Both the position numbers and the translations under genes were made by a program. The notes beneath the pieces are model-generated. The model had not been told where the DNA came from. It saw only the letters and a list, made by a program, of their open reading frames with translations, and made no database searches. From Blastocladiella emersonii ATCC 22665 (lineage: Eukaryota; Fungi; Blastocladiomycota), in the NCBI GenBank assembly GCA_025594325.1, contig JANHCV010000007.1, positions 1,674,001-1,738,000 on the forward strand: 64,000 bases of DNA, in the 5' to 3' direction. Position 1 is the stretch's first letter; every line of letters starts with the position of its first letter. Shown here in pieces: positions 43,553-52,434 of the stretch.

Positions 43553-45037
43553 GACGCGGCGGCCACGCGCGCTGACCCACGCTGACGCCCGCTCAGCGAC
43601 GCGTCACGCCGTATCGGGTGACACCCACAGCAAATCCTTCCCGCTCGTGCCGCCGACCGACCTCGCCCAACCCAAGTCTGCCGCCTCACAGCGCCACTAC
43701 GCCAGACCTCGACCGCCGACCACCATGTCGTCACGCACACCCTTACGGCTTGCTATTCTCTGCGCCAGCCTCTAACACTCTCTCACGCGCCTCGCCCCGT
43801 GGCGCGTTAGAATTTTTCACGAGGCGAGACCGAACCCCACAGCGGTTGACCGCGGGATGGCCAACTACCGTCCCGCGACTAGGTGGAGCGTCGGCGAGCT
43901 ACCGCTCCGTGCCGCCGTCCCTTCACACCCCTCCGCACACTCGCGATTGATGCACTTGGTGCGCTGCGTTGCTACTCTATGTCCGCCGATCTCGTCGGGG
44001 ATCCGCTCACGGCTCCCGGCGCGTTCGCAACCGACGAGCGAGTCCTCGCATGCGGTCCTTCCCGATGTGCGTCACCTCGCCGACGCGGTCCTGCGCGCCC
44101 GCCTGTGCGCGCTCTCTCGCCCGCCGCCAGGACGCGATCCGCTGGCCGTACATCATGATCTTCCGCACTTGCTGACAGCATCACCGGCGACGAGTAGACG
44201 TCGTGCGAACGGCGCCGTCCGCCGCGTCAGTCCTCGTCAGCGGTTCTAAGGCACCCCTTTTGCTCGCGGCTCATCGTTCTGCGGCACGCGTGCTGAACGA
44301 GCTGTGCGCTCGCTTGCTCGGGCGACCGACCGCGACGTGAAGGAACCGCGCAACATCAGCGAAGTAGAGCTGAGATTCTCGCGTCCCTCAGTTCGAGAGC
44401 CGACCGCTTGTACACTCGAGAACGGCAATGGATTAGAGTCGGCCAGCGGTGAAGGAAGCCGGCTGCCACCGTCAGTACTCATCGGCGCACTTTCGCGTAT
44501 TCGCGCCTCGCTCCCGTGGAGCGTGCGTGTCGGGCGAGCGAATCCGCGCTCGGCGACCAGTCGCGGCGCGCCTGGCCGTGCTGCGCGAACTTACTGAAGA
44601 GAATTCGATGAGGATGGGCACAGTCCGCGCGCTCGAGCACGCTCTGCCCTGCGAGCGACCCGCCGCGAGAGCCTCGGGAAGCGGCGATCACGAAGCGGCC
44701 TCGCGCGCGACAGGATCGCCCAGCATCGCAGTGACCACGGTACCAGCCATACTCTCGTACGCGCCCCGACGTATGCATCCCTGGCAATCCATGAGTTGTG
44801 TGTCTCGAGCGCCCCGCCCGCGGCCCGGACCGCGGCGCTGCATCGCACACGACGGGATCGCACGGCGGCGGCGCGGCGTGTGCGCCGAGTCCTCGCCATC
44901 GCTTCATGGGCTGCGTCGGTGCGAGAGGCCGATGCGTTGAGGGGGATCGAAGCGCATCGAACGCGGCGCGCCACACGGCTGACAAGCGGGCGCGGCCGCG
45001 GCCGCGGAAGCGATCGGAAACCGGGCGCTGCGTGGGG

Positions 45038-45058
45038 CACGTGACGCGGGTTTTCGCG
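45038..45058 (+). promoter_or_regulatory. CACGTGAC plus GGTTTTCGCG motif pair upstream of mtHSP70
   Basis: CACGTGACGCGGGTTTTCGCG about 140 bp upstream of the ATG; same pair as at 30650-30685. Confidence 0.45.
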
Positions 45059-45196
45059 ACTTGTTGTTGTCGGCTCTCTGAGGGGAGAAGGCCGCCGAAA
45101 GCGCGCGCAGCCATAAACCGGGCCGCTCCCCTGCCCCCACCATCCTCGCTCTCCAGCGTCCACGACGACCCCCGCAACCCAACAACGCACCCCACC

Positions 45197-45700
45197 ATGC
45201 TGTCGCTGACCCGCAGCGCCGCCGTGCGCAAGTCCCTGCTCCAGGCCCGCTATGCGTCGACCAAGCCGACGGGCGCCGTGATCGGCATCGACCTCGGCAC
45301 CACCAACTCGTGCGTGGCCGTCATGGAGGGCAAGGAGCCGCGCGTCATCGAGAACGCCGAGGGCACGCGCACCACGCCCTCGGTCGTGGCCTTTGCCAAG
45401 GACGGCGAGCTGCTCGTCGGCAACGCGGCCAAGCGCCAGGCCGTCGTCAACCCCGCCAACACGCTGTTCGCCATCAAGCGCCTCATCGGCCGCAAGTACA
45501 CGGACAAGATCGTGCAGGACGACGCCAAGCACGTGCCCTACAAGATCGTGGCCCACAAGAACGGCGACGCCTGGGTCGAGGCCCGCGGCAAGCAGTACTC
45601 GCCGTCGCAGATCGGCGCCTTCGTGCTCATGAAGATGAAGGAGACGGCCGAGGCCTACCTCGGCAAGTCGGTCAAGGACGCCGTGGTCACGGTCCCCGCC

Positions 45701-45742
<42 letters not shown>

Positions 45743-47231
45743 TCGATCGCCGGCCTCACGGTCCACCGCGTCATCAACGAGCCCACGGCCGCCGCCCTCG
45801 CCTACGGCATGGACAAGAACGCCGACGACAAGGTGATCGCCGTGTACGATCTCGGCGGCGGTACCTTCGATATCTCGATCCTCGAGATGCAGAAGGGCGT
45901 GTTCGAGGTCAAGTCGACCAACGGCGACACGCACCTCGGCGGCGAGGACTTCGACAACTACCTCATCAAGTGGGTCGTCGAGGAGTTCAAGAAGGAGGAG
46001 GGCGTCGACATCTCGGGCGACCGCATGGCCATCCAGCGCGTGCGCGAGGCGTGCGAGAAGGCCAAGATCGAGCTGTCGTCGACCATGCAGACCGACATCA
46101 ACCTGCCCTTCATCACGGCCGACGCGACCGGCCCCAAGCACATCAACTACAAGCTCACCCGCTCCAAGTTCGAGCAGCTCACCAAGGACCTGATCGACCG
46201 CACCGTCGAGCCGTGCAAGAAGGCCCTGCGCGACGCCCAGGTGTCGACCAAGCAGATCGACGAGGTGATCCTCGTCGGCGGCATGTCGCGCATGCCCAAG
46301 GTCCAGACCATGGTCAAGGAACTCTTCGGCCGCGACCCCTCCAAGGGCGTCAACCCCGACGAGGCCGTCGCCATCGGCGCCTCGATCCAGGGCGGTGTCC
46401 TCGCCGGTGACGTGACGGACCTGCTCCTCCTCGACGTGACCCCGCTGTCGCTCGGTATCGAGACCCTCGGCGGCGTCTTCACCCGCCTCATCAACCGCAA
46501 CACCACCATCCCGACCAAGAAGTCGCAGGTCTTCTCCACCGCCGCCGACGGCCAGACCCAGGTCGAGATCCGCGTGTTCCAGGGCGAGCGCGAGCTCGTG
46601 CGCGACAACAAGCTGCTCGGCAACTTCCAGCTCGGCGGCCTCCCGCCCGCGCCCAAGGGTGTGCCCCAGATCGAGGGTACGTCTGCTTTCGCTTCGGTGT
46701 CGCCCGCGTCCATGAGCACCCGACTAACGTTCCCATCATCGCGTAGTCACCTTCGACATTGACGCCGACGGTATCGTCAACGTGTCGGCGTCGGACAAGG
46801 CCACCAACAAGGACACGTCCATCACCATTGCCGGTCAGTCGGGTCTGTCCAAGGACGAGATCGAGTCCATGGTCGCCGACGCCGAGCAGCACAAGGAGTC
46901 GGACGCTGCGCGCCGCGAGTCGATCGAGGAGCGCAACCGCGCCGAGTCGATCATTGCCGATACCGAGAAGTCCATGGACGAGTACAAGGACCACATCAAC
47001 AAGGAGGAGGCCGAGAAGATCAAGACCCAGATCACGGCGCTGCGCGAGACCATGGGCAAGGACGGCATCACGGCCGACCAGATCCGCCAGGCGTACCACG
47101 ACGTGCAGCAGGCGTCGCTCAAGCTGTTCGAGGCCGCCTACAAGGCCCGCGCCTCCAACTCGTCGTCGTCGTCCGACTCGTCGTCGTCCACGTCCGAGGC
47201 CGAGTTCAAGGATGCCGACAAGAAGAACTAA
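45197..47231 (+). CDS. SSC1: Mitochondrial Hsp70 (DnaK-type)
   Basis: Presequence [12 protein letters not shown], then [26 protein letters not shown] and [14 protein letters not shown]; one intron near 46678-46746. Confidence 0.97.
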
Positions 47232-49066: not shown

Positions 49067-50144
49067 GTCGCTCGGGACCGACCGGCTCGCGCCGCGCGCT
49101 GCTGACCTCGCCGCGGTCGGATCCTGACTCGTCGCCACGAGGTACGTGGACCTCTTCCGTGCGTCACTCCCGCGTCCACGCCGCTGACGCGCTCCCTGCC
49201 GCGTGTGTGAGTAGCCGGACCGACGCCCGAGTGCTGCTGCGCGCGCGTCGTGTGTCGCCAGTTTCGCTGTTTATTTCACCTCCCCCCCTCGTCCTCTTCT
49301 ACCCCAAATACTCGTTGTCTACCCCCACCACCTATCGCTCGCTCTCGTGGATAATCCGCACGCACGTTTTGAATGTCGGATTCCCGCTGCGGCACGCGAT
49401 TGTTTCCTCCACCGCTCGGTTCGGCTCGCCGAGTCGTGGTACCTCGGCGACGCGAGAGAAGGTCACGGTTCAGGATCAGGGTGGCCATGGTCGCGTCGCT
49501 CGTTCGCGAGCGGCTCTTGGAGAAACTGGTCGAGGCGATCAGCTTCGCTCGCGACGTGGCCATGGTCGGTGGTCGCCGCCTCTGCAGCCGTCTTTCGTGA
49601 GCATTCCATCCCTGAGCGACGCGTTGTTCGAGTCTCGCGTCAGTGTCGGTGCTGGCCATGGCCCTCGTTAGCAGCTGCTTGTGGTTAGTGAACAAAGTGA
49701 GCCTTGACGAGAGCGCGGTCGCGCATGTCCTCGACGGCCGCGGCCACCGTGGCCATGGCCACTGTCTCCCGCCTCCTCGTGTCCGCGGCCGTGACCATGG
49801 CCACCGCTGCCAGGGCCATCGCGACCGACGCGTGGAAGGCCGACGTGGCTGGCCGAAGCGGGTGCGAAAACCGCTCAGTGCGCGATTTCTCGTGGCGCTG
49901 CGCCGTTGAGGGGTTTTCGCCCGCGCGCCGTGCGCGATTTGTTCCTCTCTCCCACACCCTCGCCCAACGTTGAGGCACTTTTTCTCATGGATCGCGACCC
50001 GTGGTGAGCGGTTTGTCGGCCGGCCGCGCGTACAAAAGGCGGGCGGGCCCCGCGCCCTCTCCCTCTCGCTCAACACCATCATCAACCCAACCTGATCCAC
50101 GCAACGCAACGCAACGCAACAACCACCAACCACCACCAACCACC

Positions 50145-50981
50145 ATGTCGTCGCCCGCCACCTCCCCGTTCCCGTGCACCTGCACCCAGTGCGACTGCAA
50201 GGGCGTCAAGTCGGCGGCGTGCACCTGCAACAACTGCACGTGCTGCGCCAAGGCCGAGGCGTGCACCTGCGACAAGTGCGCGTGCGCCGGGACCGGCAAG
50301 AAGACCGACGCGTGCACCTGCACCGAGTGCACCTGCTGCGCCGGCAAGTCGGCTGCCGCCGCGCCGTCCGCGTCCTGCTGCTCGACCAAGTCGGCCGATT
50401 GCACCTGCGCGTCGTGCAGCTGCGACGGGACCAAGGGCGCGTCGTGCACCTGCACCACCTGCACCTGTGGCTCGACCAAGGCCAAGACGGCGACCTGCAC
50501 GTGCGACAAGTGCGACTGCAAGGGCACCAAGTCGGCGTCGTGCACCTGCACCGAGTGCACTTGCTGCGCCGGCAAGCAGACGGCCGCGTCGGCATCGTCG
50601 TCGTCGGCGTGCTGCTCGACCAAGTCGGCCGACTGCACCTGCGCGTCGTGCAGCTGCGACGGCACCAAGAGCGCGTCGTGCATCTGCTCGTCGTGCTCGT
50701 GCGGTTCCTCCAAGGCCAAGGCGTGCTGCTCGACCAAGGCCGCCGATTGCACCTGCACCGAGTGCAACTGCGACGGTACCAAGGGCGAGTCCTGCACCTG
50801 CACCACCTGCACCTGCGGCTCGTCCAAGACCAAGGCCGAGACCTGCACGTGCGACAAGTGCGACTGCAAGGGCGTCAAGTCGGCGTCGTGCACCTGCACC
50901 GAGTGCACGTGCTGCGCCGGCAAGCAGGCCGAGCCCGCGGCGGCGGCGTCGTGCTGCGCGACCAAGGCCGGCTGCTGCTAA
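50145..50981 (+). CDS. Very long metallothionein-like protein, 278 aa, 70 Cys
   Basis: CACC-ATG start, intronless, 14 CxCxxCxC modules and 5 CC pairs, no His, one aromatic residue, codons almost all C/G-ending. Confidence 0.9.
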   Translation: MSSPATSPFPCTCTQCDCKGVKSAACTCNNCTCCAKAEACTCDKCACAGTGKKTDACTCTECTCCAGKSAAAAPSASCCSTKSADCTCASCSCDGTKGASCTCTTCTCGSTKAKTATCTCDKCDCKGTKSASCTCTECTCCAGKQTAASASSSSACCSTKSADCTCASCSCDGTKSASCICSSCSCGSSKAKACCSTKAADCTCTECNCDGTKGESCTCTTCTCGSSKTKAETCTCDKCDCKGVKSASCTCTECTCCAGKQAEPAAAASCCATKAGCC

Positions 50982-51516: not shown

Positions 51517-52434
51517 TTACAGCCGCGCGCGCAGACCGCCGACCGCGGGCGCCGTGGCGGCCTCGACGTAGGTGCGCCAGCACGCGCCGCCGAGGTCGAC
51601 GGGGAAGTGGACGCGGTCGGCGAGCTCGTAGAGCGGCGACTCGAGCACGGCGCGCGTCGTGATGCTGTCCGAGTCGTCGGCCTTCTGCCGCCGATTATAC
51701 GTCAGCACGAGCTGCTGGACCGCGGCCGCCGGCACGCCCAGCGCCGTCGCCATGGCCGCGGCCGTGGCCACCCCACCCGTCGCGCAGACCACGGGCGTCG
51801 CGGACCCCTCGATGTTGGGCGCGGTCCCGTTGTACGCGACGTGCGTCAGGACCAGGTTCGCGACCACGTCCGCGGGCAGCGACGTCGCCGTCACCTTGGC
51901 GCTCGCGGCCGGCGCACCAGCGGGCGTCCACCCGAGGTACGGCGTGCGCAGCGCCGGGCCGACGGTGTCGGGGACCTTGACGATGAGGTCGGCGGCCGTG
52001 GCGGACGTCTTGGCGGTCTCGGTCTCGGCGAGCGGCGCGACAATGGCGGTGAAGCGGCGCGGGGCGACGGTGGCGGCGACGGACTCGGCGGCGACGGTCG
52101 AGTGGCACAGGGCAATGTCGATGGGTTCGCCGGCGGCGGCCGCGGCGGCAGCCAGGTCGTGCACGACGCACAGGCGGCGGTCCTGGGTGACGGCGGGCGA
52201 CAGCGCGGTGCCGGTGCGGTGCACGTAGTAGACGGCGAGCAGCGGCAGGCGCAGCAGCGCGCGGATCAGCGACTCGTCGAGCGCCAGCGACGCGCTCGCC
52301 GTCACGAGCACCCGCGAACCGACGAACGTGCGCGCGATGCGGCCCTCGTCCACGGCGCGCGGCGAGCAGTCGACGTTGGCCCACCGGCGCAGCGCCGACG
52401 TCGGCGTCGAGGAGTGCATGGCGGTCGGGATCAT
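51517..52434 (-). CDS. Degenerate fatty acyl-CoA reductase / extended SDR-like protein
   Basis: RVLVTASASL (Rossmann strand lacking its glycines), LPADVVANLVL and FPVDLGGACWRTYV resemble FAR NAD_binding_4 and Sterile-domain motifs. Confidence 0.5.
   Translation of the reverse strand: MIPTAMHSSTPTSALRRWANVDCSPRAVDEGRIARTFVGSRVLVTASASLALDESLIRALLRLPLLAVYYVHRTGTALSPAVTQDRRLCVVHDLAAAAAAAGEPIDIALCHSTVAAESVAATVAPRRFTAIVAPLAETETAKTSATAADLIVKVPDTVGPALRTPYLGWTPAGAPAASAKVTATSLPADVVANLVLTHVAYNGTAPNIEGSATPVVCATGGVATAAAMATALGVPAAAVQQLVLTYNRRQKADDSDSITTRAVLESPLYELADRVHFPVDLGGACWRTYVEAATAPAVGGLRARL

Follow-up and report, generated by a model that had tools for sequence, protein, structure and literature searches.

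A single-exon gene of the freshwater fungus Blastocladiella emersonii ATCC 22665 probably encodes a cytosolic, multi-modular metallothionein (MT), and its 278-residue product, a quarter of which is cysteine, appears most likely to be an MT of very high capacity. A protein of this kind is in itself expected; what would be new is the occurrence in this lineage of a giant MT that was amplified internally and whose cysteine framework resembles that of ciliates. Giant modular MTs serve as models for growth by domain repetition and for the relation of capacity to repeat number, and the known cases come from Cryptococcus, Tremella, Tetrahymena, Oikopleura and snails. Confirmation of the present case would add the Blastocladiomycota, a lineage for which the literature we searched holds no metallothionein report, and would surpass the fungal record in both length and Cys count. 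It would also suggest one way in which a fungus with a long history as a stress-response model may handle cadmium and copper. The ciliate Cys framework would then have two independent occurrences, and the structural logic behind it could be put to the test.

Genomic context and annotation of the gene

The window analysed here is a 64,000-nucleotide stretch of contig JANHCV010000007.1 of assembly GCA_025594325.1, a genome of 66% GC, and all positions below refer to it. The coding sequence lies on the plus strand; it starts with an ATG at 50145, ends with a TAA whose last base is 50981, and comprises 837 nt (278 codons plus TAA) in one exon. The assembly was built from PacBio HiFi reads, and since such reads are ~10 kb in length, collapse or expansion of a 0.8-kb repeat is unlikely. 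The original prediction had placed the gene among those that are often missed or misannotated; this does not hold, as the public annotation of GCA_025594325.1, whose gene models were made ab initio with funannotate, already calls it as an unnamed 278-aa single-exon product without a Pfam match.

The neighbours of the MT-like gene are genes for Hsp70 and eIF4E, a gene for a 305-aa protein and a MAPEG gene, with a coproporphyrinogen oxidase gene also nearby. MAPEG proteins are a membrane glutathione-transferase family, and the Hsp70 gene (44798–46762), the MT-like gene and the MAPEG gene (from ~53467 onward) thus put three genes of stress or detoxification type inside 9 kb, a proximity that may be coincidence. 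The adjoining 305-aa open reading frame (51517–52434, minus strand) has no Pfam match, is the sole member of its cluster in the protein collection and is apparently another lineage-restricted gene.

Coding potential and selection

Five of the six reading frames are open over the repeat region, and 66% GC makes long open reading frames cheap, but the codon bias of the host is found only in the frame that encodes the cysteines. GC3 in this frame is 0.968, against 0.955 for the Hsp70 gene and 0.938 for the coproporphyrinogen oxidase gene, while the other five frames range from 0.33 to 0.78 apart from one antisense frame that mirrors the Cys frame. A CAI-like index trained on the same two neighbouring genes gives 0.81 for the Cys frame and 0.08–0.57 for the other five. 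In-frame GC3 upstream of the ATG is only 0.54, which places the start of coding at 50145.

The repeats within the gene provide a second line of evidence. Their copies share 80–91% DNA identity with dS values of 0.18–0.64, from which it follows that they are not recent, and across this divergence of 9–20% there is no stop codon, no frameshift and no loss of a cysteine. The 19 Cys columns are all constant between repeats, whereas 40 of the 61 other columns vary (Fisher p = 2e-7). Most pairs of units give dN/dS ratios of 0.2–0.5; ratios near or above 1 are found for the first A unit (A1, below) against the other A units, where very few sites are available. That the Cys columns stay invariant among diverged repeats points, from within the gene itself, to selection on the framework and to translation of this frame, and the framework has been under purifying selection since the internal duplications. 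On sequence grounds the gene is thereby confirmed as real, intact and codon-adapted, its combined repeat and coding signature lying far beyond chance.

Composition of the predicted protein

Translation reproduces every figure of the original prediction: 70 cysteines in 278 residues (25.18%; 69 of the 70 are encoded by TGC), exactly 14 matches to the regular expression C.C..C.C, and a terminal CC. This last pair is one of nine, which start at residues 33, 64, 78, 140, 156, 194, 256, 270 and 277, and 56 of the 70 cysteines sit in CxC motifs. The other residues include 45 Thr, 43 Ala, 38 Ser, 28 Lys, 17 Gly, 13 Asp, 8 Glu and 5 Pro, of which all but the Pro make up nearly the whole remainder. Arg, His, Tyr, Trp and Leu are entirely absent, Phe occurs once, and only five residues in the whole protein belong to the set L/I/V/M/F/W/Y. 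The 28 Lys thus stand against no Arg, although the genome has 66% GC and the neighbouring proteins use Arg freely. Its predicted mass is 27.0 kDa. In agreement with the original prediction, the N-terminus, MSSPATSPFPCTC, contains no hydrophobic segment and shows no signal peptide.

An AlphaFold model from the single sequence shows no confident fold (mean pLDDT 55, pTM 0.31), although it renders each CxCxxCxC as a short strand, and at such low confidence a fold search was not justified. The lack of a confident fold in the model is what would be expected of an apo-thionein, but it discriminates only weakly.

Repeat architecture

The 14 motifs pair up as seven double modules of eight cysteines, CTCxxCxC-xGxKxxx-CxCxxCxC, with the consensus CTCxxCxC-xGTKSAS-CTCTxCTC, in which the eight Cys and a single position each of Thr, Gly and Lys are invariant. 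Flanking CC pairs contribute one or two further cysteines to each double module, giving units of 9–10 Cys that are connected by short linkers, small and polar in character, of Lys, Ser, Thr and Ala. The units come in two flavours. Flavour A, with nine cysteines and four copies, has the form CTCDKCDC-KGxKSAS-CTCTECTCC-AGK plus an Ala/Ser linker; flavour B, with ten cysteines and three copies, has the form CC-STKSAD-CTCASCSC-DGTKGAS-CTCTTCTC-GSSKxK. Their order along the chain is A1 A2 B1 A3 B2 B3 A4, followed by the tail CCATKAGCC.

All units are read on the plus strand. Unit A1 (residues 11–39; 50175–50261; 9 Cys) reads CTCTQCDC-KGVKSAA-CTCNNCTCC-AKAEA, and A2 (residues 40–77; 50262–50375; 9 Cys) reads CTCDKCAC-AGTGKKTDA-CTCTECTCC plus an Ala/Ser linker. 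Unit B1 (residues 78–117; 50376–50495; 10 Cys), which has the framework C2X6CXCXXCXC, reads CC-STKSAD-CTCASCSC-DGTKGAS-CTCTTCTC-GSTKAKTAT. It is followed by A3 (residues 118–155; 50496–50609; 9 Cys), B2 (residues 156–193; 50610–50723; 10 Cys), B3 (residues 194–233; 50724–50843; 10 Cys) and A4 (residues 234–269; 50844–50951; 9 Cys), with A3 and A4 sharing 90.7% DNA identity. The C-terminal tail (50952–50978) holds four cysteines and resembles the truncated start of a B unit.

The tandem four-module block that the original prediction described is borne out by comparison of the units at the DNA level. B1+A3 (residues 78–155) and B3+A4 (residues 194–269) are 88.6% identical, A2+B1 and A3+B2 are 83.3% identical, and Tandem Repeats Finder (TRF) detects periodicities of 45 nt and 114 nt over the repeat region. 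These two matches identify the amplified unit as a four-module (A+B) block, and as far as the history can be read from the repeats they show that the protein grew by repeated internal duplication of this two-unit block.

Searches for relatives

Searches for homologues returned no relative in any of the collections covered. Pfam yielded no family, and the PDB no chain, even at E = 10. A word-indexed search of 5.8 billion proteins found no relative with the whole protein, with one 76-aa block or with an alignment of the seven units, and neither did an exhaustive phmmer search of 1.84 billion representatives. At this library size, E values of 1e-12 to 1e-16 are still reached by a copy of the protein in which every residue other than Cys is randomised, and 5e-9 by a single 38-aa unit, so compositional bias is not the cause of the blank phmmer result. 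At the DNA level, a 31-base degenerate pattern for the double module found nothing in JGI metagenomes or in GTDB genomes, and back-translated peptides found nothing in the former; these two collections define the scope of the DNA searches, whereas unannotated MT genes would sit in eukaryotic genome DNA.

The blank searches are weakened by one observation on the databases themselves: the exact 278-aa protein is missing from a collection of 15 billion proteins in which the adjacent 305-aa product of the same NCBI annotation is present, which indicates that Cys-rich, low-complexity proteins may be under-represented there.

A looser Cys-framework pattern gave more than 120 matches in GTDB genomes. 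Eight loci on bacterial contigs, picked mainly for multiple tandem matches to the codon-level DNA pattern for CxCxxCxC-x7-CxCxxCxC, were translated and rejected as relatives: all eight proved to be simple-sequence tandem repeats, whose frames made no sense and contained stops or runs of CCCC, and not Cys-framework proteins.

A literature search found no paper that ties Blastocladiella to a metallothionein, and no mention of metallothionein was found in the literature on heat and cadmium stress in B. emersonii, including the EST paper on cadmium and heat shock (PMC2773782).

The upstream region

The ATG stands in the context CCACCATGTC and is preceded by 157 nt without another ATG. Directly adjoining it is a CA-rich leader (50099–50144, plus strand) containing (ACGCA)4 and (CAACCACCAC)3, which is probably the 5' UTR. 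Further upstream, at -280 to -205 (49858–49940), is a set of proximal promoter repeats whose putative link to the MT-like gene is uncertain: an inverted pair of GGTTTTCGC at 49864 (minus strand) and 49912 (plus strand) is interleaved with a direct duplicate of GTGCGCGATTT, an element that the window contains only at 49878 and 49930.

Between 340 and 660 bp upstream of the ATG (49481–49804), in non-coding DNA that shows no coding signal, the 14-bp palindrome GTGGCCATGGCCAC, a candidate cis-regulatory element, occurs five times in a cluster. The copy at 49749 is perfect and those at 49481, 49556, 49653 and 49791 are near-perfect, and further near-matches are found at 51746, 51758 and 54781. Allowing at most two mismatches there are 8 matches in the window as compared with 0.37 expected, and the clustering is far above chance. 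Yeast-type motifs for Cu (Ace1/Cup2, CuRE), Zn (ZRE), AP-1, heat shock (HSE) and Cbf1 are absent from the 1 kb upstream of the ATG, and cores of the animal MRE are below background in the same interval. The gene might be controlled via the array of palindromes rather than by a known metal-response element.

Probable assignment as a metallothionein and alternative explanations

MTs are recognised by a Cys content of ~15–35 mol%, by conserved CxC, CC and CxxC clusters, by few or no aromatic residues and His, and by a mass under ~10 kDa. In its residues and their arrangement the Blastocladiella protein agrees with these traits throughout: it has 25.2% Cys; its clusters comprise 14 CxCxxCxC and nine CC with all 19 Cys columns invariant; and it contains one Phe and no His, Tyr or Trp. 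At 27.0 kDa it lies above the usual mass, as do the accepted giants TmMT of Tremella mesenterica and OdiMT2 of Oikopleura dioica. An extreme asymmetry of Lys over Arg and a scarcity of bulky residues are likewise traits of MTs (PMC1808422). The classification of MTs recognises 15 families, of which six are fungal, and the curated family profiles (Pfam MT models) give no significant match. The 7-Cys block of Neurospora, Cryptococcus and Tremella, CXCX3CSCPPGXCXCAXCP, is absent: the protein has no PPG and only five Pro, and is built instead on the unit CxCxxCxC-x7-CxCxxCxC. The Cys spacing of ciliate family-7 MTs is present, with C2X6CXCXXCXC occurring three times and CXCXXCXCC four times, although the conserved Lys positions and CCC of that family are absent. 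The product would resemble a ciliate family-7 MT in its working, a candidate likeness that does not imply membership of the family.

Three other explanations were weighed against this assignment. The likeliest of them, which we nevertheless consider unlikely, is an intracellular Cys-rich protein whose metal binding is incidental and whose main job is something other than metal sequestration, such as buffering thiols or redox state, storing cysteine (sulfur), or acting as a Zn-dependent scaffold for interactions at one stage (sporulation, zoospore). The promoter, where known metal-responsive elements were not found, is compatible with such a role, as are the redox and other functions with which MTs are generally credited (PMC1808422) and the apparently constitutive behaviour of TmMT itself. 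The clustered spacing of the cysteines, however, is strictly conserved and coincides exactly with the spacing in modules proven to bind metal, and with neither a hydrophobic core nor other domains in the protein, thiolate–metal clusters are the only obvious route by which it could fold.

There is also a small chance, in our estimation, that the cysteines form disulfides instead of ligating metal, in a secreted or structural protein such as a component of the wall, cyst or sporangium, or a Thr/Cys beta-solenoid like the antifreeze proteins of insects. The short strands that AlphaFold draws at each CxCxxCxC and the richness of the protein in Thr and Cys are in keeping with this explanation, but the model is of low confidence (pLDDT 55) and no sequence in the PDB matches even at E = 10. 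Secretion would further require a signal peptide that the current gene model lacks, and while an ab initio model could have missed a 5' exon, the leader is CA-rich without coding signal (GC3 0.54), the ATG context is strong, and there is neither a hydrophobic N-terminal segment nor more than five L/I/V/M/F/W/Y residues in the entire protein. Moreover, CxC and CC spacing, flanking Lys and the lack of aromatics other than the single Phe are typical of thionein clusters and not of disulfide knots. That the locus is non-functional, either a gene that has recently died or a GC-rich minisatellite with one frame open by chance, is very improbable, since the long open reading frames in five of six frames and the failure to find homologues elsewhere are outweighed by codon bias confined to the Cys frame, by repeats diverged by 9–20% with zero stops, frameshifts or Cys losses, and by a start context and leader that look like those of an expressed gene.

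Under the metallothionein assignment a mechanism can be proposed. The apo-protein would be largely unstructured, and each unit of 9–10 Cys would wrap one metal–thiolate cluster, in the manner of the 9-Cys beta domain of vertebrate MTs or the Cu4Cys8-9 cluster of Yarrowia; with one cluster per unit, about seven would be strung along a flexible chain. Extrapolation from long MTs already characterised suggests a capacity of ~21–25 divalent ions (Zn/Cd) or ~28–55 Cu(I). The divalent estimate derives from the Oikopleura repeat, at about 7 M(II) per 19–20 Cys; the lower Cu(I) estimate, of about 28 for seven units, from the Cu4Cys8-9 cluster of the Y. lipolytica MT; and the upper, of about 50–55 Cu(I) for 70 Cys, from TmMT, which binds Cu40-45 with 57 Cys. 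In the cytosol of a freshwater fungus such a protein could serve to buffer or detoxify Cu, Cd or Zn.

Neither the metal preference nor the inducibility of the protein can be read from its sequence. In ciliates the CC-containing 7a type responds to Cd and the CxC-only 7b type to Cu (PMC1808422), and the Blastocladiella protein combines CC (7a-like) with CxC (7b-like) features. The fungal precedents for long MTs are Cu-thioneins.

Comparison with known metallothioneins

The closest fungal counterparts in size are TmMT (257 aa, 57 Cys, 25.4 kDa, 10 exons, apparently constitutive) and the Cryptococcus neoformans proteins CnMT1 (122 aa) and CnMT2 (183–186 aa), all of which are assembled from the 7-Cys Neurospora-like block with its conserved prolines. 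The lengths of CnMT2 and TmMT and the 7-Cys block were given in the original prediction, and published papers confirm them. Like the Blastocladiella protein, these are very long fungal proteins dominated by CxC, of ~23% Cys with small residues and Lys in between, that grew as a Cys block was amplified in tandem. They differ in the block itself, which in Blastocladiella consists of two CxCxxCxC (8 Cys) flanked by CC, in gene structure (10 exons in TmMT, one in the Blastocladiella gene) and in phylum (Basidiomycota and Blastocladiomycota). High Cu(I) capacity is proven for TmMT and the CnMTs. With 278 against 257 residues and 70 against 57 cysteines it exceeds TmMT, and it would be the longest fungal MT, exceeding all those characterised.

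Beyond the fungi, both TmMT and the Blastocladiella protein are surpassed in length by OdiMT2 of Oikopleura dioica, with 399 aa, 123 Cys and about 7 M(II) bound per repeat of 19–20 Cys, so the longest known MT is not the Blastocladiella one. OdiMT2 and the multi-domain MTs of molluscs, which are also large, offer a parallel in that a two-domain repeat has been amplified in tandem and capacity scales with the number of repeats, but they are animal proteins made of unrelated domains of 12 or of 7–9 Cys.

At the other extreme are the fungi-IV MT of Yarrowia lipolytica and the 8-Cys MT of Heliscus lugdunensis, whose 8–9 Cys come near to the count of one double module and which are set beside it here by description only. 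The Heliscus MT starts with CxCxxCxC. Both are single-unit proteins, in contrast to the seven units without a Pfam match found here. The Y. lipolytica MT forms a Cu4Cys8-9 cluster, which could by analogy be a model for a single double module.

In its Cys framework the protein resembles the metal-induced family-7 MTs of Tetrahymena. Díaz et al. viewed these as built up hierarchically from the motifs C2X6 and CXCXXCXCC(K), the 7a proteins (MTT1/MTT3) containing the submodule C2X6CXCXXCXCCK and the 7b proteins (MTT2/MTT4) the repeat CKCXXCKC (PMC1808422). The claim that the Blastocladiella module is a distinct one must therefore be withdrawn with regard to its elementary frameworks, as C2X6 and CXCXXCXC(C) are common to both: the three B units begin C2X6CXCXXCXC and the four A units end CXCXXCXCC. 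Hierarchical internal duplication, unusual length, a bias of Lys over Arg and few bulky residues are likewise shared. The two nevertheless lack significant sequence similarity by phmmer, and they differ in length (278 aa in the fungus, 162 aa in the ciliate proteins) and in what stands between the cysteines. The x of CxC is Thr in 19 of 28 cases in Blastocladiella and Lys in Tetrahymena, and unlike the Tetrahymena MTs the fungal protein has no CCC clusters, its CC pairs being followed by Ala or Ser and never by Lys. Given no detectable homology and differing inter-Cys residues, the simplest reading is that the ciliate-like Cys framework is convergent. We put forward more tentatively the idea that the protein represents an orphan family confined to Blastocladiella, which would be the first MT of a zoosporic (early-diverging) fungus and the largest MT of any fungus, having gained the ciliate-type blocks and their hierarchical amplification independently. 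Were this the case, Tetrahymena and Blastocladiella would together present a clean natural convergence of modular, high-capacity metal sinks in freshwater unicellular eukaryotes.
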